A stretch of DNA of 64,000 bases from Chlorokybus atmophyticus (Eukaryota; Plantae; Mesostigma and Chlorokybus algae), in contig RHPI01003599.1 in assembly GCA_009103225.1 (NCBI GenBank), positions 124,001-188,000 of the forward strand. Direction: 5' to 3'. The notes beneath the pieces were generated by a model, which saw only the letters and a program-made list of their open reading frames with translations, searched no databases and was not told where the DNA came from. Numbering within the stretch: the first letter of the stretch is position 1; every line of letters starts with the position of its first letter. The translations under genes and the position numbers were made by a program. Positions 1 through 15,249 of the stretch are shown in pieces.

Positions 1-70
1 CGGAGGACGAGGACGAGGAGGGGGAGGAGGAGGAGGAAGAGGCGTGAGGTCAGGTTGGTTGGGTGTCAGC

Positions 71-3000
71 ATGGGGGAGAGGATACTGCAACGCGTGCTC
101 CTGCCGCCGGAGCACGCCGACAAGCCCGCCCTGGTGGTCACGGATGGCGGGCCGGCGATCACCTACAAGCAGCTTGCCCAGCAGGTGTTTGTGCCTTTTT
201 CTGGCCTGCCCTGGCCTGGTGGTGGTGTGTCTTAGCTTGCATGCTGGTGCAGGTGGATTCCGTCGCCGAGCAGCTGGCTGGTTTTGGCCTGAAGAAAGGC
301 GACGTGGTGACGCTAGTGCTGCCCAACAGCCTGGAGAACGTGGTGGTGTTCTTGGCTGTTGCCTCCAGGCTGGGTGCCGTCGCCGCCCCACTAAACGCCA
401 CCTACACGGAGGAGGAGTTCAAGTTCTACATTGAGGATGCTGAGAGCAAGGCCGTGGTGCTGTTTAGGGAGGAGGGGAAGAATGCCGCTGCAAAGGCGGC
501 GGGCAACAGCCTGAAGCTGCCCATGTTTGTTGCTCAGGCCGACGACAAGGGCGTCATCACCCTCACGCATGTCGCCAGCTCCGCCGCCCCGGCCTCGGCT
601 CACAACGATTTGGCTGTCCCGTCTGAGGATGATGAAGCGCTCTTCTTGCACACCTCAGGGACAACTTCAAAACCCAAGGTAATGCGTGAAACAAACATGC
701 ATGCCCATGCATGCATGTTTTACGAGCGCATTGTGCATATGTAACCAGTAAACCAACACCTCTCTGTAAACTACACTGTCAGTATGCACTTTACAGCTTG
801 CAGTGTCAGCACATTGTGCGGGCATTGCACTCTTTGCAGTCCCATGCTCCTCCCCCACCGCACCTTCTCGGCTACGTGTGAAGTGTGATGCTCGAATGTT
901 ATGCGAACACCATGCCACGTTTGGTGCATGGCGTAGTGGTAAGCCCAGCTGTCCAGCCAGTCAGCATCTTTCGCCCTTGCATGCACTGGATGTTGATGTC
1001 TCGTTGGCATGTGAGGTTAGAGTAGTCAACAGCATGACTGAGTGTTGTGGCTTATAGCAGCACTGGTCGTCAAGAAGGCTGAGGTGACATGCAGCTGGTC
1101 TCAAGATACAATGAAGCATTAGTTTGTTAGCTTAATAGCTGAAGACCCCCCCCCTCCCCGTCTTTCTATCTTTCCATATCCTTGCGTGTTGTGCAGGGTC
1201 CAGTTAGGGTCCAGTAATGGCTGTTCCTTGTGTGATCATCTGTACACTTGTTGGGCTACATTCCCCCCCTCCCCCCTTTTATTGTGCTACTCGTAGCACT
1301 AAACCATATAATGAAGGGGCCAGGCTTGTGAGTATACTTGTGGTTTGCAGTCTTGTGCGCATGCTCGCAATTGAAGGCCACGCATTGCGCAGGGCGTGCC
1401 GCTGTCTCAGAAGAACCTTAGCATATCAATCAAGAATATAGTTGCAACCTACGAGCTTTCACCCGCGGACCGCAACCTGTTGGTGATGCCACTCTTCCAC
1501 GTGCACGGGCTTATGGCAGCACTGCTCGCCACGCTTGCTTCCGGCGGTGCAGTCATTATTCCTTCCAAAGGCGCATTTTCAGCATCCAGCTTCTGGACAT
1601 ATATTGAACAATACAGTTGCACATGGTACACGGCCGTGCCCACCATACACCACATCTTGCTCTCGAGAGCGAAGCAGGACTTCCCGGACGGCAAACACCC
1701 GCCGAAGCTGCGATTCATCAGAAGCTGCAGCGCCGCGCTCGTGCCAGCCGTGTTAAAAGAGCTGGAAGAGAAGTTTCAAGCTCCGGTGCTTGAGGCGTAT
1801 GCTATGACTGAAGCGTCTCACCAAATGACTTCAAACCCGTTGCCTTCAAGAGGGCCGCACAAGGCGGGAACTGTTGGGCTCGGGACGTACGTGGAGGTTG
1901 TCATTCTTGATGACAACAACCAGAAGCTGCCGCCAGGAAAGGTGGGAGAGATTTGCATCAAGGGTGAGAATGTCACTTCTGGGTACAAGAACAACCCCGC
2001 GGCGAATGAGGCAGGCTTCGCCGGTGGTTACTTCCACACTGGTGATCAGGGCTTCCTGGATGAGGAGGGTTATGTGACCATAGCTGGCAGAATCAAAGAG
2101 CTCATCAACCGAGGCGGTATGTTGTCCTGCATGTTGGTTTGTGTAGCAGCTTTTGTTGCGACATGCACGCGCACGCACGCGTGCACACTCATACACACGA
2201 GCGCATGCGCATGCTGGCGTGCACGCACATGCGCACACACATATATCAAAGCTGTAGCACGCATTCCAAAGTTGTTGTCAACTTGCCGGTGCCGCACTTG
2301 TTCATTGTCAGGAGAGAAGATTTCACCACTTGAAGTTGACGCTGTGCTGATTGCGCACCCGGCTGTGAGTGAGGTTGTGACCTTCGCGGCACCGGACCCC
2401 AAGTATGGCGAGGTTGTCAATGCGGGCGTGGTGCTGAGGCCGGGAGAATCGGCGACCGAAGCGGATCTGCGCGAGTATGCTCGCAAGAGCCTCGCGTCGT
2501 TCAAAGTCCCCAGCAAGGTCAGTGCGCACACAAAAAGTAAACACTTGTGCATTGCACTCAGTGCGTCGCATGAGTGCAATGAGTTAAAGCTACGGCCAGT
2601 AGGACTAGCGGACCTTCCACATTTCTTATGGCTCAACATGGAGCTATAGTGATACTCCTATACTTGTTGGTATCTGCTAGGAGGTAATGAGTATGCAACA
2701 GAGGTAGAAGGCGACGTGTTGTCCGTACATATACGTGTGTGTGAAGCGTGTGCCTGTATTGGTCTGTCTGTCTGTCGCTACCCAGGTGGATGGCCTTTGG
2801 CTCATGGCTAGTACTGCGTTGCAGATTTATATTTCAGACACTATACCAAGGACGGCCACAGGGAAGATCCAGCGGCGCATTGCCGCAGAGTTTTTCCTCA
2901 AGCCGCAGGGCCAAGCAGCTGATGCTGCCCAGGCCAACCCTGCCAGCTCCACGGCAGCAGCAGCGGACAGCAACGGCAGCAGCAGTGCGGACGTCGTGAG

Positions 3001-5327
3001 CGGGTTCGACATCACTGCGCGCGCTCTGGCCAAACTGGGGATTAAAACCATCTACGGCGTCATCGGCATCCCCGTGACGCAGTTGGCGACGTCCGCCCAG
3101 AGGGCCGGCGTGAGGTTCATTAGCTTCCGCAACGAGCAGGCTGCAGGGTATGCCGCAGGCGCTGCGGGCTACCTCACGGGCGTGCCGGGAGCATTCCTCA
3201 CTGTGTCGGGACCCGGAGTCGTCCATGGCCTTGCTGGACTCAGCAACGCCACCACCAACACCTTCCCGCTCATCATGCTGTCGGGATCCACCCAGCGCAC
3301 CAATGTCGGCAAGGGCGGCTTCCAAGAACTGGACCAGGTGAGATGAACTGCATAGGGGTGCAGTATGAGGCCGCCTTTGGCGTATGTGTGTGTGCGTGTC
3401 CATGTGTGCATGTGTGTGTGAGCATTCATGCGTGCATGCCTGTATGTGCCTACGTATGCGAGCGCATGTGTGTGTTACCGAGGCCTTGACACATTACCCG
3501 ACAGGTTGCTGCAGCCAAGCCCTTTTGCAAGGATGGTCAAACCTTTGCCATTCAGAAGGCCGCAGACATCGGCAAGGGCCTTCAACAGGCCATCACCGCA
3601 GCCGTGTCTGGTCGTCCCGGTGGCGTGTACATGGACTTGCCCGCAGACGTGTTGCGTGAAAACTTACCAGCTGCGGAGGTTACCAAGCTGCTCTCGGAGT
3701 TGTCACCTGTTTCATCTCCCAAACAACAAGCGGATGCGGCGGCCATATCTGCTGCAGCCGAAGCATTACGCACAGCAAAGCGGCCGCTTGTTGTGATTGG
3801 CAAGGGCGCTGCCGCAGCCTTTGCAGGTACACATGCACACGCGAATCACTCTCTTGCTGTGTTCTGGCATGCACGCTAAGAGGTTGCCATGGCCAACATC
3901 TTGTGATGCTGCTCCCAGAGACGGAGCTCAAGACGCTTGTTGAATCGACCGGCATCCCGTTCCTCCCCACGCCAATGGGGAAGGGCGTGCTGCCGGACAC
4001 GCACCCGCTGTCAGCCACCGCGGCGCGCTCGCTGGTGCTGGCCAATGCCGACGTGGCGCTTGTCGTTGGCGCCCGCTTCAACTGGATTCTGCACTTTGGG
4101 GAGGCCCCTCGCTGGTCAAAGGACGTAAAGTTCGTCCATGTTGACATTGATCCAGGTGCGCACGCACGCTCAAACACACGATGATGCATGACCTGTTCCA
4201 TTCTCGCGCACGCGCACACAAACTTACTCAGTCCTTTGCACTCAAGCATCCTTGACGATGTTTACATACTGACACGCACACACGCTCGCACAGTGACTCG
4301 TGCATGACCTCTTTTACAACACAGCATTGCAGCAGCATCAGCAGTTAACCAACGAGCCATCCTCAAGCTGTGTGTATCTTTGATAGAGGAGGCCAGGCCG
4401 CGCAAGGAAGGGGACATTGCGCTTGTGGGTCACGCCGCGACGGTTGTTGCTCAACTCAACAAGGAGATCAAAGACACCCCATTCTCTTTCGGTAAGGACC
4501 ACGAGTGGATCTCCCAGATCACCCAGCAGACCAGCAGTAGAGCAGCCGCATTGGAGAAGCGGCTGCAACAGGACGTGACCCCTCTGGACTACCACACTGC
4601 GCTGAGGGTGATACGCGACGCGTTGCTGGTATGTTGTGTTTGGTCTACAGCGCAGTTGTTGTTGTGGTGATGGAGGCATATCAGCAACTTGCTCTTTTGC
4701 AGGAAGTGAAGCCAACGCCCATGGTTGTCTCTGAGGGCGCCAACACAATGGACTTTGCACGCACAATTATACCCACTCTGGAGCCACGAGGTCGATTAGA
4801 CGCAGGAACATGGGGCACCATGGGCGTTGGTCTCGGGTACACACACATGAAAATGCACATTGTGCTTGAGTATTTGCCTCTCGTCAAGCTCATGTGTCAA
4901 CGCAACCCACAGGTACGCCATCGCTGCAGCAACAGTGCATCCGGACCGTTTGACCGTCGCCATCGAGGGCGATTCGGCGTTCGGCTTCAGCGGTCTCGAG
5001 GTGGAGGTCCTCGCTCGATACGACCTGCCCGTTGTAGTGATTATCTTCAACAACGGCGGCATTTACGGCGGCGACCGTAGGACTGTGTCCGATAATGTAA
5101 CTGGTCCGGGTGGGAAGCCCGACCCCGCACCCACGTCTTTTGTAGAAGGTGCAAAGTACGAGTTGATAGCTGAAGCCTTCGGGGCTAAAGGTTATGCTGC
5201 CGCGGATGCGAAACAGCTGACAGATGCGGTGAAGGAAGCGTTTGCGGCGAGGAAACCAGCAGTGATAAATGTGGCGATTGATCCAATGGCTGGCACGGAA
5301 AGCGGCAACATGCAGAGCCACAATTAG
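71..5327 (+). CDS. AAE3-OXC: Bifunctional oxalate-CoA ligase (AAE3/Pcs60-like ANL enzyme) fused to TPP-dependent oxalyl-CoA decarboxylase / 2-hydroxyacyl-CoA lyase; 10 exons, about 1110 aa
   Basis: Exons 71-184, 253-678, 1393-2116, 2312-2517, 2825-3337, 3505-3826, 3919-4155, 4387-4628, 4703-4836 and 4913-5327 are all GT-AG bounded, sum to 3333 nt and stay in frame. Ligase motifs: [70 protein letters not shown]-enzyme motifs: [69 protein letters not shown]. Confidence 0.95.
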
Positions 5328-5723
5328 CCTGTTGACTGGAGGTTGTACATATGTTGCTGTAGCACGGTTGTATGCGTTGCTGTGCAGAAACGGTTGGGTC
5401 ATATACTGTATGTGATGACTGTAGCTATGCGTGTGCTGTTGGGGAAGTGAGCATTGTGTGGTGAACATGTTTTGTGTGGTCAAAGGACTTCCATGCCTTT
5501 ATTGGTATAATAAGCATACTGTGATGTTATACCAATCTTTTGTTTGTCCCTGCAGCCAGCACATGCATTAAAGTGTATGTGGCGGTTGGATCTATTCGAC
5601 TAACATTTGCAGACATACACTGTTCATGGCATCAGCAATTACGTGGCTGCACCGGTTCATAATGATCTCTCTCTCATGTCTGCTGTTGTGCTGGTGTGAG
5701 TACCGTAGTGCTAGGAATGTTCC

Positions 5724-6295: not shown

Positions 6296-7120
6296 CCCCC
6301 CCCCTATGACAAGCCCCCTTGGCAAAAAAGGGTGGGGGGCTTGTGTAAATACTTGTACCCCCCCCGACCATTTACAAGCCCCCCACACGACTCAACGGGG
6401 ACCATTTTGCCCCGTGTGTAACGGGAAGGTGCATCAGATTACCACAAATCAACCATAAAAGTACCAAGTCTTTTGTGGTCGAGTGGGCTGTGACATTGGT
6501 CATCGGAGCTTGAGACCCGGGTTCGATTCCTGCCTTGCACACGAATTCCGCGGTCGTTGTTTCTCGATCCAATAATATCGTAAATGGTCACTTTATGAGT
6601 GCCATCATCGATGGGTCGCGACTTGCCTAATGGCAGTCGCGCCGAACTGACAAGTTCATTCGTCGCGGCAGGGCGCGACCTGCCTATCGCGGCGACGCGA
6701 CCTGTGGGGCCGGCAACGGCGCGCTATGCGCGCGCTGACCGGTATGGGCCTAAATTGGCCGGTCCCTGGCTGTGGGGCCGGTGACCGACCCTAAATCAGA
6801 CCCCTGGGAAGATTCCCCAGCTGATGAGCGCCAGCTGCCGAGGACGTCAGCGTTCTTAAGTGGGGGGAATGTAACGGGAAGGTACATTAAATTACCACAA
6901 ATTTGACCATAAAAACACCAAGTCTTTTGTGGTCGAGTGGGCTGTGACACCGTGACTTACGCTTACGCGCGTAGGTTACGCTGTTATGTGTGAGACTCGC
7001 GAGCGTCAAATGTAACCCTTGACGCGCGCGAGTCTGACAGGTAACAGCGTAACTCGCCGAATAGAGGCCCCCCCTATTACAAACCCCCCTCATAATAAAA
7101 GGGTGGGGGGCTTATGTAAA
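6296..7120 (+). mobile_element. Putative non-autonomous repeat module with terminal direct repeats, an internal 80 bp direct repeat and a tRNA-like Pol III A/B-box segment
   Basis: ccccc.a..acaa.cccc...aaaagggtggggggctt.tgtaaa occurs at about 6296-6350 and 7068-7120. 6417-6495 is repeated at 6870-6949. A-box-like TGGTCGAGTGG at 6476-6486 and B-box GGTTCGATTCC at 6520-6530. Confidence 0.5.
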
Positions 7121-7660
7121 AAGAGGGAGCTTCTCTACTGGTGACAACGGTAGCACACAATATGTTACATGATTCACCACCTGGCTACGCTATCTACACT
7201 ACCACTACGCTACTCGGCTTCCCAGTTAGTCATACAAGCATGCAAGTGTCAGAGTCAATCATCTGCACAACGGCGCAGGGTTAGCGACGAGCCCTTAGGC
7301 CCTAGCAGCAGCAGCCCAACAGGACTCCTTTCCATCGTCCCACACTGCCACCTCCGCCCACGCTGTACTCACTTACAATTGCATTGCAATTGCTGCCCCC
7401 AGGCAGCATGGCAGTGCACGTTAGGGTTAGGGTTAACCGGCATGCAACATGCACCACGTCAGCATGAAACTGCCTGTGCAATTGAGGTCGTCGCTGTGCA
7501 CAACAGCACTTCACATATCCTGTGCACTCACACGGTTCTGATGTTTGCATGAGTACTACTCTGTGCATACCAACAACTCACATCTACAGAGGCAGGTTGC
7601 AGATGGGTACCGTACTGTTAAGAATGTTTTGATTTTTGTAACTACAAACATTCAACTAGC

Positions 7661-7870
7661 GAAAAGTTTAATAGCGCTCAGCCGTAGCTGGTCAAAAGTT
7701 CGTAAGAATAACTGTTGCATGCCGTTGAACCAATGTAAACGCCGAATTGACTTTTGCAAGGCTGGTAAAGGCTTCAATTAAGGCCGTTTATGATCGTTTA
7801 ATCAAAAGTGGCAGCGCCTCCGGCACAATCGTCAAATTAAGAAGTAACTCGTTAACACAAAAAACAGTCA
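7661..7870. repeat. Right arm of the approximately 200 bp inverted repeat (partner 5724-5921)
   Basis: Its reverse complement matches 5724-5921. Confidence 0.9.
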
Positions 7871-8212
7871 GTGCAATCGCGAACGATGCACGTGAATGAA
7901 GATCAATCGAGTGGTTATGCAATAAGCTGTAGAACCCATCATCATACACTGTTTTGCATAGTGCAAAAATGTTTTGGTCTGCCAAGCTGCGATGTTGTGC
8001 GAGCGCACATCTCATTCGCTCTCTCTCGCAAGCGCGCGCGCAATAGAGAGGAAGCGCGCATTTGTGCATAAATATGTGCATGCGTGTTGGGCTGAGCTTC
8101 CGGTGTACGCAGTACACCGTAGGCTACCGTATTGACACATACATTACAACCCACAGTCAATTATGCAAATTACTCTTCATTTTAACTTTTTGCTGTTTTG
8201 ATGATACAAGTC

Positions 8213-8522: not shown

Positions 8523-10041
8523 GCCGTCGCAAATGTTACACCCTGACTGACCAGGGACTGAAGGACTGCTAGGTGCCTGACCCAAACTGACCTATCGGAT
8601 AGGTCCATGAAGGGACTTATGGGACGGCCGTTGCTACTAAGCAACACTCGATGACGGCCAGCCGCCGGCCGATAGTTACTCACGACGGTGGCTTGCCTGC
8701 AGTGGCAAGCACGTGACTATACCACGTGTTTACTGTGACGGCCGACCGCCAGTCGTCTATTGTGCGCGGCGGCAGCCTACCTGTTGCTTATCAATGATGA
8801 TAAGCAAGTGACCGGCCGTCCCTTGCCGCGTGTTTAATGTGACGGTCGACCGCCGGTCGTCCACTTAGCGCGGCGATAACCTGCCAGTTGCTTATCAATA
8901 ATGATAAGCAAGTGACCGGCCGTCCCGGCTCGGCGGCGAGCAATGCCGGTATTACCTTTAAATCGGACGGTGACACGATGCGATTGGCGTACTGTAATGG
9001 TACAACGCTCGAATGTACCATTCAAATGTGACCATAATAGTAAGATAGTTCCATTGTCTGACACAATGGCATCGGCGTACCATTCAAATGGTACGCCGGT
9101 GCCATCGTATCACCTCGTTTGAATCACTTGGCCTGCCCCAAGTGATTCAAAAGCTCAACGGCTTCAAGTGGAGACTGTTCAACCAGTTGCTGGGCGGCGG
9201 CGGCGGTGGCGGTGGCAATGGCCAATAGTAAGCTTGTTTGCTATATGCTATGACGCTTGGTATGGGCAGTGGCGCATGCAACCTAACCGCCCTTCCTTGT
9301 TGCCTCAGGGCGGTCAGCCCAGGCCAGGCCAGGCCAGGCGCGGCGGCGGCGGCGGCGGTACATGGTAAGGGGCAGCATCTGAGTGCATATGTTGTATATG
9401 TTGCTGTTGATGGCATTTGTTTGATTCAACAGCTTGCATGCTTTCCAGGAGCGGCGGCGGAGGTGGAGCGCGGTGCAGTGAGTGCAGGAGCGGCGACTTA
9501 GTCTACTAGTTTAAGGCCTTAGTATACTAGAGTGGTAGTAGCAGCTCAGTAGTGTACAATGTGGCATAGTGGTATGACTTGCAATGTCTTTTCTTTATCA
9601 CTTTCTAATTTAATTTTTTCTAAAAGGCCGTCTTTCACAGTTGATGCGAGGTATTCAATGATGACTACACAGCAATGACAGGTACCTGTAGCGGTACCCT
9701 TCTGTTACGGCAAGTATCTTGAAGGTACCATAAGGTACCTGTCAATCACACTTACTTAGTGTACAGTCGCCGGTACCTAACTGATACGTACCGGTTAATT
9801 ACCTACTAGTTGGGTTGGGTAAGTCCCTTTTACCTGGCTAATGGGTACCTTACATGTACCTGTCAGTCTAGGTCAGTTCCTTTATTAAGACGGCCGCCGA
9901 CTAACGGTGACGGCCGTTAAACTCAGGTCTCTGTATCGAGATTACAGGTGGACTGAGGTACGACAATCTAAATGAGTATCCTCAGGTGCACGGCCGTTGC
10001 CAATATTTAACCGGCCGGCAGGAGAAACATTTTGCGACGGC
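8523..10041. mobile_element. Hairpin-rich, non-coding putative TIR/foldback DNA element
   Basis: gccgtcgcaaatgtt (8523-8537) matches the reverse complement of aacattttgcgacggc (10026-10041). The interior has a duplicated ttgcttatca-nnnn-tgataagcaa-gtgaccggccgtc unit, 18 bp and 14 bp hairpins at 9066-9151, and many ggtacc motifs. No transposase ORF. Confidence 0.45.
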
Positions 10042-10093
10042 GCTGTTGTGGCTTACTCCTTAAGCATGTGTTAGCGTATGCCATATGCCAACC

Positions 10094-10094
<1 letters not shown>

Positions 10095-10125
<31 letters not shown>
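10095..10125. repeat. (CA)n microsatellite
   Basis: About 15 perfect CA units. Confidence 0.95.
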
Positions 10126-10127
<2 letters not shown>

Positions 10128-10983
10128 CCTGCTGCACAGCGAGCTTGGTTGTGTCTTAACATTTCATGCTATGATATTTGTGCGTTCAACGGGAACAAAT
10201 TGCCGTAATTGATTGCGAGGTCGATGGTGGTGGTGTGCATGGTCAGTGCTTCATGTTGGCTTAGTTGCTCGTAAATAGTCACCTTTTAAAATTTTGTCAA
10301 AAGTTTTAAATGGATGCCAATCCCGAGTTTGCGTTGCCCCGCACATTTGCTAGGGAAGTCAACTTATCAAAGCCACTGTATCAGGAGTTTGAGGCTGTAA
10401 CGCTAGCAAAGGGCCACTCGCAAGTCACGACCTGAAATCTTGCAAATAATGCCATTACGTAAGCATTGGGGCATGGCGTCGGCCTCAACATGAAGAGTAA
10501 CCATACTCCGAGTCTCTATAATGCATATTAATATGGAAGCTAATCACCTAAGCAACGCCACCGTAGAGGATTTTAGGAGTGTGACGGCGATGTTCTAGCA
10601 ACCTAGGCTGCAAAGATTGATCATACGGTTCAGATCTGAAGTTTTTGTTGCGCATTTTAATGAAGCCTCAAGAACATAGTTGCAGCAGCAGTTTAAGACG
10701 CGCATATCCGTCTCGTAGCCGTGGCAGGAGAATGCATTCTCATCCATTACGGTGGAACTGGATGGAAAGATTGCTTCTAAAAAGCGCTTTACAAAGCTCG
10801 ATTAATGTAATAACCCGTCCAGCGAAACATCACGGAAGGTCGTTGTGACGCTGGCTAAAGCTAAATATGCTTATACCACACTTGAGTGACGACAATGCAA
10901 CTCGCAATACAATTGTGTGATAACACACTTATATGACACAACACTCGCACACTAGCTTACACACATGTCACTCTTAACTTGCG

Positions 10984-13160: not shown

Positions 13161-14319
13161 GATTGTGTGCTAGAGTACGCTGGTGTGGATAGTTGTTTGT
13201 CTCATAGTTGCACGCATCTATCGGTGTGCGTGTACTTGTATAAGTGCGCGCACGTTAGTGAGAGTGTATGCATGCGCCATGGTGTCACTTATGCCCGCTG
13301 CATTTACGTGTGTGGCACACGCAGGCGCACACACATGTGCACACACACATACACGCCATCTGCAATTGCATTCTCACTTCTTCGCTCTTTTCCTCCACCT
13401 TCTGTCTCAGTTTGGTCTCCCACTCCAACTTCGCCTCACACATCCTCCACTGCTACATCACCCTTTGCTTGGCGTAGCCCACCTCGTTGCTGTGGCACAT
13501 CACCTCTTATGGGCCACAGACCTGAAGTACTCAAGCTGGGAGAGGACATTGCCTTTACAGATGGAGGATTTGGTTGTGTGTGTAATTGTGGATATGTCGG
13601 GAGGACGGGGAAGGTGGTGGGGGTCCATGCAGGAAGAGAGAGGGTTGAGGTTGGTACAGGTTGGTACAAATATACATGGAGCACTTGGCCCATGATCGCT
13701 GCTTGATCACTCGACAATGCTATTTAGTTATATATGTGTATCACTGCAGTAATATCTTGCGCAAAAAGCGGGCTGCTTGGAGTAGGCACCAGCGGGACTT
13801 CAAGTTAAGTTGTTACACTGATGCATGCATGCATGCATGCATACATGCTGGCATGCGGTCCCAACTGCATGTGGAATTCTTGCTATTCTCACGCCCAGCC
13901 TGTTGCGTGCATCAAGGGACACATGTGTCACATCAACATGCGTGCCCTGACTTGTTGTTCGATACTCTGTGTTGGTTGGTTGGTATTAGGTGGTTACTAC
14001 TGTTCTCTCTCTTGATGTCATGTGAAATCGTTTGTGCCGTGTCACATTGAAGGCAACGCTAGCAGTCACATCTGAGACACACGGATAAGCACGTCGAAAA
14101 GCACGCTTGCTTTTTCAATCAATATTATGGCATAATACATGTAGTAATGTAAACACTCGCTGGGGCATGCATGCGTTTGCGTACAAGCTGTTCGCGCGTC
14201 CATTGCTCCACTGGGTTGAGATACCTCAAGACAGAAATAGGCCTAGTGGCATCATGTTGGAGGCAAAATGCGTGATACATAATAACCTTTTGTAAGTGGT
14301 AACCCCGCAATATCGCATG

Positions 14320-14564
14320 TGTGCGAATACAGCCCCCTCTTACAAGCCTCCCCCNNNNNNNNNNNNNNNNNNNNNNNNNNNNNNNNNNNNNNNNNNNNNN
14401 NNNNNNNNNNNNNNNNNNNNNNNNNNNNNNNNNNNNNNNNNNNNNNNNNNNNNNNNNNNNNNNNNNNNNNNNNNNNNNNNNNNNNNNNNNNNNNNNNNNN
14501 NNNNNNNNNNNNNNNNNNNNCCTTTTCAATGGGGGTGTTGTCATAGGGGGGTTCCATTCGCACA
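14320..14564. mobile_element. Small inverted-repeat-bounded element whose interior is an N run (14355-14520); same repeat family as 6296-6350
   Basis: tgtgcgaat...ccccct.t.acaa is on the left and its reverse complement ttgtcataggggg...attcgcaca is on the right. The reverse-complemented right end (ccccctatgacaa...ccccc...aaaagg) resembles 6296-6330. Confidence 0.5.
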
Positions 14565-15249
14565 AATACGGCAGTTACACGAACGTGGATTTACATCCCC
14601 ATGTATAAGGTAAATGGGGCCCGTAATACTAAAGTGTTTGTATCAATTGTATGCATAGCGTTTACAGCAACGCAGCGTTCATGCAGTATAACAACAACTT
14701 GACATATAGAGGCACATTGTTATGTTATACTGCGCGTTATCATGAAGGCAATTGTCAATTGTTGATATAAAACATGATGAAAACAGAATACCGTTAAAGT
14801 CCACATGCATTACGCAAATAATTGAATCAAGGTATCTTAATATTATTAATAACGCAAGACCCTACATCATAGCCCGTCGTTGCCCCCCCCCCCCCCCCCC
14901 CCCCCCTTTCGACCAAATGCATTAACAATAACCTCACGGGTGTGAGGGGGGAGGGGGGGTAAAGAGATGNGGTATGGAAGCTGCTTAAAGTCATGATGAT
15001 CCAATATGGATGGTTGATGTGTGGGTGTGGTTGAGCAATTTAACACGAGACAATGCTTTCGCATGTTCGCATGTTCGCGCATGCGTGGCACAAGTCATTA
15101 AAATGATTACTTTGATAGATGTAATGCTGATAAGAAAATACAAGCAGAAAGGCTCTGTTTCTGCACATGCTTACCAGTGGCTTCAACAATTGCAATGCCC
15201 ATGTTGCAATAAAGGGAAATAAGGAAAATGTTAGTATGCATGTAAGCCC

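Follow-up and report, generated by a model that had tools for sequence, protein, structure and literature searches.

We describe a gene in a 64,000-nt stretch of the genome of the early-branching streptophyte green alga Chlorokybus atmophyticus (assembly GCA_009103225.1, contig RHPI01003599.1, positions 124,001 to 188,000 of the forward strand; hereafter the window, in whose numbering all coordinates are given) that appears to encode both steps of an oxalate-degrading pathway for which flowering plants use two separate, successive enzymes. Its 1110-aa product is predicted to be one bifunctional enzyme, in which an oxalate-CoA ligase is joined to a plant-type oxalyl-CoA decarboxylase (OXC) dependent on thiamine diphosphate (ThDP), and it would belong to an old family of such fusions. 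From the sequence evidence laid out below, we put the probability of this reading at about 0.78.

Gene structure and the junction exon

The gene lies on the plus strand and was rebuilt by hand from six-frame open reading frames (ORFs) and the raw sequence of positions 1-5700, with the result checked by script. Its ten exons form a coding sequence (CDS) of 3333 nt that translates into 1110 aa without internal stops, and all nine introns have GT-AG borders. When Pfam was run separately on each exon, the domains followed in the order AMP-binding (exons 2-3), AMP-binding_C (exon 4), TPP_enzyme_N (exon 5, residues 60-171), TPP_enzyme_M (exons 6-7), and TPP_enzyme_C (exon 10). Every exon junction is free of gaps in an alignment to six orthologues. 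The parts of the gene are the following.

71..5327, plus strand: whole fusion CDS, with ATG at 71 and TAG at 5325-5327; differs from public model P0001 in the exon 6 acceptor alone
71..184, plus strand: exon 1 (aa 1-38); the start agrees with orthologue N-termini
253..678, plus strand: exon 2 (aa 39-180), first part of AMP-binding (PF00501, E = 8e-25)
652-678, plus strand: P-loop motif TSGTTSKPK at the end of exon 2, read from the sequence
1393..2116, plus strand: exon 3 (aa 181-421), AMP-binding core (PF00501, E = 1.6e-41; 6qjz, E = 6e-93)
1501-1506, plus strand: V217-H218 of the oxalate pocket, exon 3
1726-1731, plus strand: C292-S293 of the oxalate pocket, exon 3
1801-1806, plus strand: A317-M318 of the oxalate pocket, exon 3
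1819-1821, plus strand: H323 of the oxalate pocket, exon 3
2312..2517, plus strand: exon 4 (aa 422-490), AMP-binding_C, the mobile C-terminal subdomain of the ligase (PF13193, E = 2.5e-14)
2825..3337, plus strand: exon 5 (aa 491-661), the junction exon, with ligase end, linker and start of the ThDP PYR domain in a single open frame
2846..2878, plus strand: ligase A10 motif of 11 aa (aa 498-508) with catalytic K504, equivalent to AtAAE3 K500
2900..3001, plus strand: linker (aa 516-549) with many Ala, Ser, Gln, and Asn residues, unconserved and predicted disordered
3002..5324, plus strand: OXC-type ThDP half (aa 550-1110), with introns between its exons, from Pfam, PDB, and alignment matches
3134-3136, plus strand: catalytic Glu E594
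3320-3325, plus strand: F656-Q657
3505..3826, plus strand: exon 6, with its acceptor at 3503-3504 here and at AG 3518-3519 in the public model
3919..4155, plus strand: exon 7, TPP_enzyme_M (E = 9.9e-22)
4387..4628, plus strand: exon 8, junctions colinear with orthologues
4703..4836, plus strand: exon 9, junctions colinear with orthologues
4913..5327, plus strand: exon 10, TPP_enzyme_C (E = 6.7e-20), C-terminal lid and stop codon, with no type 1 peroxisomal targeting signal (PTS1)
4968-5054, plus strand: GDS...NN motif for ThDP and Mg
5064-5066, plus strand: active-site Tyr (Y1019 in P0001 numbering, Y1024 in the 1110-aa model)
5298-5303, plus strand: lid Glu-Ser

A search of 1.8 billion representative proteins with exon 5 as query returned a 100%-identical protein of 1105 aa, in which exon 5 makes up residues 491-661. 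A separate search of protein clusters with this exon gave only short clusters that carried no information. This public Chlorokybus model (jgi/Chlat1/8086/Chrsp75S07584, here P0001) differs from ours solely at the exon 6 acceptor, which it places 15 nt downstream, dropping VAAAK. The compared orthologues carry five residues at this site (VAAVx or LAAVx), and the exon 6 start at 3505 is therefore preferable.

The single frame of exon 5 (513 nt) runs from the end of the ligase through a low-complexity linker of 34 aa into the ThDP enzyme, of which it encodes the first 112 residues. Met is absent between residues 325 and 641 of the fusion protein, and the first one to follow, at 641, lies past the cofactor-activating Glu 594, so the ThDP half cannot be translated alone from an AUG. 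The initial annotation of this DNA had placed the ligase end and the ThDP start in one uninterrupted exon at 2825-3337, joined by an Ala/Ser linker of approximately 33 aa, and had held that the fusion was not a gene-model merge. We reproduced these coordinates exactly and found the linker to be one residue longer and rich in Gln and Asn as well; with the junction inside one exon and the ThDP half lacking a Met of its own, the fusion is confirmed as a genuine single polypeptide. The strength of the matches is far above chance (per-exon Pfam to 1e-41, PDB to 1e-167 for the ligase and 3e-146 for the ThDP half). It is highly improbable that the locus is an annotation or assembly artefact in which two genes were joined, or a decaying pseudogene: although orthologous loci have been mis-annotated (wrongly split in Klebsormidium, joined in one Sphagnum species and split in others), both domain ends here fall in the same frame of one continuous stretch, the catalytic motifs are all intact, and the junctions are all colinear with those of orthologues.

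Among 34 aligned orthologues, the linker measures 13-43 aa (median 28.5) and is in frame in every case, with a column identity of 0.22 as against 0.69 and 0.75 in its flanks. An AlphaFold2 model built on the orthologue alignment reached a mean predicted local distance difference test score (pLDDT) of 84.3 and a predicted template modelling score of 0.56. Longer stretches with pLDDT below 50 were confined to three places, residues 413-425 of the ANL hinge, 519-544 of the linker, and 1099-1105 of the C-terminal lid, the last being as expected of a flexible segment. The model indicates two rigid modules joined by a flexible tether.

The ligase half

In a HMMER search of PDB with residues 1-520, the best matches were Arabidopsis AAE3 (5ie0, 2.7e-167), Lathyrus OCS (6qjz, 2.1e-164), and yeast Pcs60 (8aff, 2e-133), and the next ligase family after the oxalyl-CoA synthetases followed at E = 8e-64. 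In bit scores, AtAAE3 reaches 560.6 and FadD13, of the next family, 219. The core motifs of the ANL superfamily are present, namely the P-loop TSGTTxxPKG, the hinge that closes exon 3, and the A10 motif PxTxxGKxxRR with its catalytic Lys. In trees, the ligase half falls within a clade with plant AAE3-like ligases.

The oxalate pocket of AtAAE3 consists of V215, H216, C288, S289, A313, M314, H319, and K500, of which S289 and H319 are reported to be conserved solely among oxalyl-CoA synthetases (PMC8905533). Pairwise and family alignments place V217, H218, C292, S293, A317, M318, H323, and K504 of the Chlorokybus protein at these positions, so that all eight residues (VHCSAMHK) are kept, seven of them in exon 3 and K504 in exon 5. 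Across the 34 fused orthologues, the pocket is invariant or nearly so, and K504 is invariant. The assignment of the N-terminal half as an AAE3/Pcs60-type oxalate-CoA ligase (EC 6.2.1.8), as it had first been read, is thus supported by a complete pocket at the level of sequence. The known enzymes of this type (AAE3, Lathyrus OCS, and Pcs60; 5IE0-5IE3, 6QJZ, 8AFF) share the ANL fold, motifs, and pocket but are stand-alone proteins of 514-543 aa, whereas in Chlorokybus the mobile C-terminal subdomain of the ligase runs on into the flexible linker and a ThDP enzyme of 561 aa; Pcs60 also carries a PTS1, unlike the Chlorokybus protein.

The ThDP half

The C-terminal half contains the three domains of ThDP enzymes (PF02776, PF00205, and PF02775; PYR, R, and PP), with the activating Glu E594 inside an FRNEQ motif and a Mg/ThDP motif of the form GDSAFGFS...NN. 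With residues 545-1105 of P0001 as query, the PDB matches were E. coli OXC (2q27, 3e-146), the 2-hydroxyacyl-CoA synthase HACS (8vzd, 3.4e-144), M. extorquens OXC (7ayg, 4.1e-142), O. formigenes OXC (2c31, 4.3e-139), and the 2-hydroxyacyl-CoA lyase HACL1 (6xn8, 8.2e-134). Because these E-values are nearly equal, the solved structures do not separate OXC from HACL. The closest stand-alone relatives are land-plant proteins at 55-60% identity, and the match to the Arabidopsis cluster P0282/P0523, which contains HACL_ARATH (At5g17380), is 56% over 99% of the length. For At5g17380 (AtOXC), oxalyl-CoA decarboxylation has been demonstrated in vitro and in planta, and the enzyme is cytosolic and co-expressed with AAE3 (PMC8004701).

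The active-site residues of the M. extorquens enzyme (MeOXC) are I48, Y134, E135, A415, Y497, E567, S568, and I571 (PMC8411744). At the corresponding positions, the Chlorokybus protein has F-Q at 134/135 and keeps A415, Y497, and the E567-S568 lid; the O. formigenes (OfOXC) residues Y483 and S553, equal to MeOXC Y497 and S568, are likewise kept (Y1019, E1097, and S1098 in P0001 numbering). The full pattern, F-Q-A-Y-E-S plus the lid PxAGxESGxM..N, is shared with the Arabidopsis cluster P0282. Relative to Arabidopsis OXC and maize OCD1, the likeness extends over the whole ThDP half, with identical catalytic Glu, F-Q, A, Y, and E-S residues, and AtOXC ends in the same ...ESGxMxHxN without a PTS1. 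AtOXC is, however, a separate protein of 572 aa at its own locus, and the trees place it within a group of fused or tandem streptophyte sequences. In NCBIfam, the Chlorokybus half scored 643 bits with the OXC equivalog NF006721 (cut-off 557) and only 261 bits with the actinobacterial HACL model. Together, these likenesses support the view that the C-terminal half is an ortholog of the experimentally shown Arabidopsis OXC and a plant-type oxalyl-CoA decarboxylase (EC 4.1.1.8); the initial annotation had seen an OXC/HACL-type enzyme and named it an oxalyl-CoA decarboxylase, and the orthology and the shared active-site and lid residues bear this out.

Certain observations weigh against this reading. 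The bacterial Y-E pair (OfOXC Y120/E121, MeOXC Y134/E135) is F656-Q657 here, as in HACL and HACS (structures 8vzc and 8vzd); the OXC equivalog TIGR03254 gave 614.7 bits, below its cut-off of 739.4 (NCBIfam); and the automatic UniRef and NCBI names for these proteins are 2-hydroxyacyl-CoA lyase. The pair and the names, along with the nearly equal HACS and HACL1 matches, would also suit a role in alpha-oxidation, in which the ThDP half acts mainly as a 2-hydroxyacyl-CoA lyase, or in reverse as a synthase, and the ligase activates a 2-hydroxy or other small acid. Promiscuity between the OXC and HACL reactions is known in this family (PMC8411744), and the Chromera protein has been listed as HPCL2 in a peroxisome survey (PMC5755239). 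We nonetheless consider this role unlikely, as the ligase pocket equals that of AtAAE3 at every residue, including the Ser289 and His319 equivalents, and AtOXC decarboxylates oxalyl-CoA with the same residue set and lid. The equivalents of Y497 and E567-S568 are Gly or absent in HACS structures (Gly at the Y497 position) and fungal HACL-type proteins, and a branch with 100/100 support in the careful tree splits the fungal HACL group from the Chlorokybus protein, plant OXC, Galdieria, and bacterial OXC. Since the experimentally verified Arabidopsis cluster also has F-Q, the Y-E pair marks a bacterial subtype and not an activity. With F-Q common to AtOXC and HACL/HACS, the decarboxylase may still have a side activity as a 2-hydroxyacyl-CoA lyase.

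The bacterial OXCs (2C31, 2Q27, 7AYG) share with the Chlorokybus half the three-domain fold, Y497, E567, S568, A415, and the flexible lid, and differ in Y134-E135 and in the equivalog that fits, the Chlorokybus protein lying below the TIGR03254 cut-off but above that of NF006721. Bacteria pair OXC with a formyl-CoA transferase, not with an ATP-dependent ligase. HACL1, HACS, and Pxp1-like proteins (6XN8, 8VZD; Letharia, Kuraishia, Ramicandelaber) share the fold and the F-Q-E motif after the PYR domain, but the fungal HACL-type proteins (also Dispira) have K-L-F or similar in place of the E-S lid and end in a PTS1 (SKL, PKL, or ARL), whereas the Chlorokybus protein has the E-S-G lid and no PTS1. 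An identity as an opisthokont-type HACL1/Pxp1 was rejected on the lid residues, the missing PTS1, and a tree in which fungal proteins represented the HACL group.

Distribution of the fusion

The possibility, raised at the outset, that similar fusions are annotated in other algae proved correct: a length-restricted search with the whole protein as query, followed by retrieval, gave 49 proteins with more than 300 residues of both halves, from chlorophytes, streptophyte algae, liverworts, Galdieria, and chromerids. The five-domain architecture occurs in liverworts and Sphagnum, in streptophyte algae (Spirogloea, Mesotaenium, and several Closterium), and in chlorophytes (Trebouxia, Myrmecia, Coccomyxa, Symbiochloris, Botryococcus, Chlorella, Micractinium, Chlamydomonas eustigma and Chlamydomonas UWO241, Chromochloris, Polytomella, Ostreobium, Chloropicon, and Auxenochlorella). 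It is also found in the red algae Galdieria sulphuraria, G. phlegrea, and G. yellowstonensis, as well as in Chromera velia and Rhytidocystis pertsovi. The architecture is annotated in dozens of organisms, and the Chlorokybus gene thus belongs to a large family. The support goes beyond gene prediction: a single genomic ORF without interruption covers aa 1-956 in Galdieria; a fused ORF of 1093 aa stands on intron-less contigs of 3.5 kb from four independent samples; and complete fused ORFs are present in Trinity, MMETSP, and TSA transcript assemblies.

The deposited fused models have their five domains in the same order, are about 1100 aa long, and are 42-57% identical to the Chlorokybus protein over 95-100% of it (e.g. 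Marchantia polymorpha BBN15885.1, an 'oxalate---CoA ligase' of 1101 aa, Galdieria sulphuraria, Chlorella sorokiniana, and Chromera velia A0A2K8DNE1). A Coccomyxa sp. Obi deposit is named 'probable 2-hydroxyacyl-CoA lyase at C-terminar half'. In Klebsormidium nitens (DF236998.1, 5806-25319 of the retrieved locus), the halves are annotated as adjacent genes. The ligase model (511 aa) has a false C-terminus without the A10 lysine, and its neighbour (618 aa) is called a 'pyruvate decarboxylase family protein', but an ORF at 9977-10204 of this locus holds the A10 motif, a linker, and the ThDP start, the same junction-exon design as in Chlorokybus. The Klebsormidium fusion gene is thus wrongly split in the annotation.

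Other fused proteins came up alongside this family. A glaucophyte transcript (Gloeochaete wittrockiana, MMETSP1089; P0191) has the reverse order, with the ThDP enzyme at 15-541, the ligase at 609-1098, and the end SRL; its ligase keeps the oxalate pocket, and its ThDP half is without the E-S lid and groups apart from the OXC-type clade. A second fusion event, independent of the first, seems likely. An 855-aa protein (P0021) carries a PEP_mutase/isocitrate-lyase-family domain (6-242) ahead of an OXC/HACL-type ThDP enzyme; that superfamily includes the oxalate-forming oxaloacetate acetylhydrolase, and P0021 may be another oxalate-related fusion. In Namystynia karyoxenos (P0213, 920 aa), Formyl_trans_N and Formyl_trans_C precede an OXC-type ThDP enzyme with the E-S lid, so that a formyl-handling domain adjoins a producer of formyl-CoA. 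Finally, proteins of about 1700-1900 aa from cyanobacteria and metagenomes (P0216, P0225, and similar) resemble non-ribosomal peptide synthetases (NRPS) and have an adenylation domain that shares 46-49% identity with the oxalate-ligase half. P0216 has two AMP-binding and two PP-binding matches and one Condensation domain; going by such resemblance, proteins of this type may be oxalate-activating NRPS modules.

Bryophyte loci

The fused state is ambiguous in bryophytes (Sphagnum, Marchantia), which counts against our reading. In Sphagnum balticum, the halves stand in tandem 820 bp apart (7000-8010 of locus L002), and the last residues of the ligase exon, ...KESASG, precede a stop, over which the S. 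fallax model splices; the gene is joined in one Sphagnum species and split in others. In Marchantia paleacea (4334-5000 of locus L009), the ligase exon ends one codon before a stop (donor G|GT, stop TAG), and the linker contains a GT-AG intron of about 460 nt with an in-frame ATG two codons before the acceptor. An RNA-derived Marchantia contig (L011) lacks two other introns and keeps the linker intron, so both ORFs lie on one RNA in Marchantia. The M. polymorpha reference model is fused, with 1101 aa. In Physcomitrium, mRNA-sized contigs carry the ligase by itself, and a stand-alone ThDP mRNA with stops in its 5' untranslated region is found on moss-like contigs from metatranscriptomes. As a stop follows the donor and a start codon precedes the acceptor, the bryophyte locus can yield either product, and it looks 'split-capable', giving a fused protein or two proteins.

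These loci give some substance to the idea that the gene makes two proteins, by linker cleavage, an internal promoter, or a non-AUG start, and that fusion is only a device for co-expression. A disordered and variable linker is accessible to proteases, and post-translational cleavage of it may occur, to the detriment of our reading; the stop after the donor and the M. paleacea ATG before the acceptor make two proteins possible in bryophytes. For Chlorokybus this is nevertheless quite unlikely. The liverwort fused models require an intron in the linker, but the Chlorokybus linker contains no intron, stop, or Met, and the first Met after aa 325 comes too late to spare Glu 594. In addition, the linkers stay in frame in 34 of 34 aligned orthologues, whose divergence spans an estimated billion years and more.

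Phylogeny

Quick and careful trees were built for each half, with animal HACL1, yeast Pxp1, and PDB sequences outside the sampling. The trees of both halves agree with one another and broadly with the species tree. The fused proteins of core chlorophytes group together in one clade (ThDP half 100/100, ligase half 100/99), and a streptophyte clade unites Klebsormidium, Zygnematophyceae, and embryophytes (100/98 ThDP and 100/99 ligase in the careful trees; 100 in the quick ThDP tree). This streptophyte clade, whose algal members are fused, also takes in the stand-alone proteins of vascular plants, among them Arabidopsis OXC and AAE3-like ligases. Judged by these trees, the fused family is old and vertically inherited in green algae. 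A fungus-attributed ligase ('Hyaloraphidium curvatum', P0401) was nested in the streptophyte clade in both ligase trees, a placement that suggests contamination or gene transfer.

In approximately unbiased (AU) tests, for which the groups were named after the trees had been seen, holding the fused streptophytes together without vascular OXC made the ThDP tree 45 log-likelihood units worse (AU p = 0.013). Less favourable to an ancestral fusion, the equivalent constraint on the ligase half, with vascular AAE3 outside the fused streptophytes, was not rejected (AU p = 0.21), and Chlorokybus sits at the base of both trees without a firm position, joining the streptophyte clade only in a wider group. 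A clean nesting of vascular AAE3 inside fused sequences was accordingly given up for the ligase half, and nesting is kept for the ThDP half only. The fusion probably predates the two separate genes of plants, and the most economical reading of the trees is a fused green-lineage ancestor from which later fission produced vascular-plant AAE3 and OXC. We give even odds to the wider account in which the fusion is ancestral in the green lineage, the AAE3 and OXC of vascular plants and true mosses arose by fission, bryophytes retain an intermediate with tandem halves and a linker intron bordered by an in-frame stop and a start codon, and the enzyme is peroxisomal in most chlorophytes and cytosolic in streptophytes; in the literature that could be searched, no part of this account was found. 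On that account, the fused proteins would also be ready-made, compact catalysts from oxalate to formyl-CoA.

Cellular location

The Chlorokybus protein ends in ...SGNMQSHN, directly followed by TAG; PTS1 is absent, and the earlier statement to this effect, based on the end QSHN, was correct for Chlorokybus. The streptophyte and Galdieria members end at ...HxN without a PTS1-like tail, whereas most chlorophyte members, Chloropicon, and Chromera have an added tail of SKL, AKL, PKL, SKM, AKM, SKV, SNL, or SKI (PTS1-like C-termini: P0156, P0158, P0163, P0166, P0167, P0174, P0176, P0179, P0181, P0184, P0186, P0187, and P0013). All of these tails fit the PTS1 consensus. The distribution suggests a switch of compartment, between peroxisome and cytosol, within one orthologous family. 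With neither a PTS1 nor a visible N-terminal extension, the Chlorokybus enzyme is probably cytosolic, like AtAAE3 and AtOXC.

Surroundings of the gene

None of the antisense ORFs within the gene (113-197 aa) matched Pfam, and we regard them as frames that arose by chance in GC-rich DNA. The 11 kb downstream (5.4-16 kb) contain no convincing long ORF and nothing related to the fusion gene. A run of N at approximately 14125-14565 of the window is an assembly gap.

Proposed mechanism

We propose that the N-terminal ANL module (aa 1-515) would adenylate oxalate with ATP, after which its C-terminal subdomain would rotate and the oxalyl group would be passed to CoA. The oxalyl-CoA could then diffuse the short way to the ThDP site (aa 550-1110), where formyl-CoA and CO2 would be released, for a predicted net reaction of oxalate + ATP + CoA -> formyl-CoA + CO2 + AMP + PPi. 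In OXCs, two subunits together form the ThDP site, so that dimerisation through the C-terminal half, at the least, is to be expected; that half may oligomerise as in OXCs, with the ligase modules on the outside. The two activities would be present in equal amounts (1:1) and near one another, and the labile intermediate would thereby be used where it is made. Channelling of oxalyl-CoA, as put forward in the initial annotation, is conjecture; with a disordered tether of 13-43 aa as the linker, a case can be made for proximity and 1:1 stoichiometry but not for a tunnel.

Significance

No description of a ligase-decarboxylase fusion was found in the full-text literature searched, with subscription-only papers such as Shockey & Browse 2011, which reportedly treats plant and algal AAE families, outside that search. 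A 2022 phylogeny of plant OXC took in Chlamydomonas and Physcomitrium without mention of a ligase domain (PMC9090294). The fused models are public but listed under the name of one half only. The fusion reveals no new reaction, since both activities and the pathway are established in Arabidopsis. As the initial annotation had suggested, it serves as Rosetta-stone evidence for the pathway, and we take it as independent support that the plant HACL-like ThDP enzyme works with an oxalate ligase, which bears on the long-standing question whether At5g17380 and its algal relatives should be named HACL or OXC. It also exposes systematic annotation errors, both in wrong names and in the wrongly split Klebsormidium gene.

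If our reading is true, the Chlorokybus gene would be a single-gene module for the ATP-driven conversion of oxalate to formyl-CoA and CO2, of interest for oxalate degradation or for one-carbon engineering based on formyl-CoA. For the family as a whole, the finding offers an evolutionary account in which an old fusion underwent fission toward vascular plants, with a split-capable intermediate in liverworts and Sphagnum, and in which one orthologous family may have changed compartment, carrying a PTS1 in chlorophytes and none in streptophytes.

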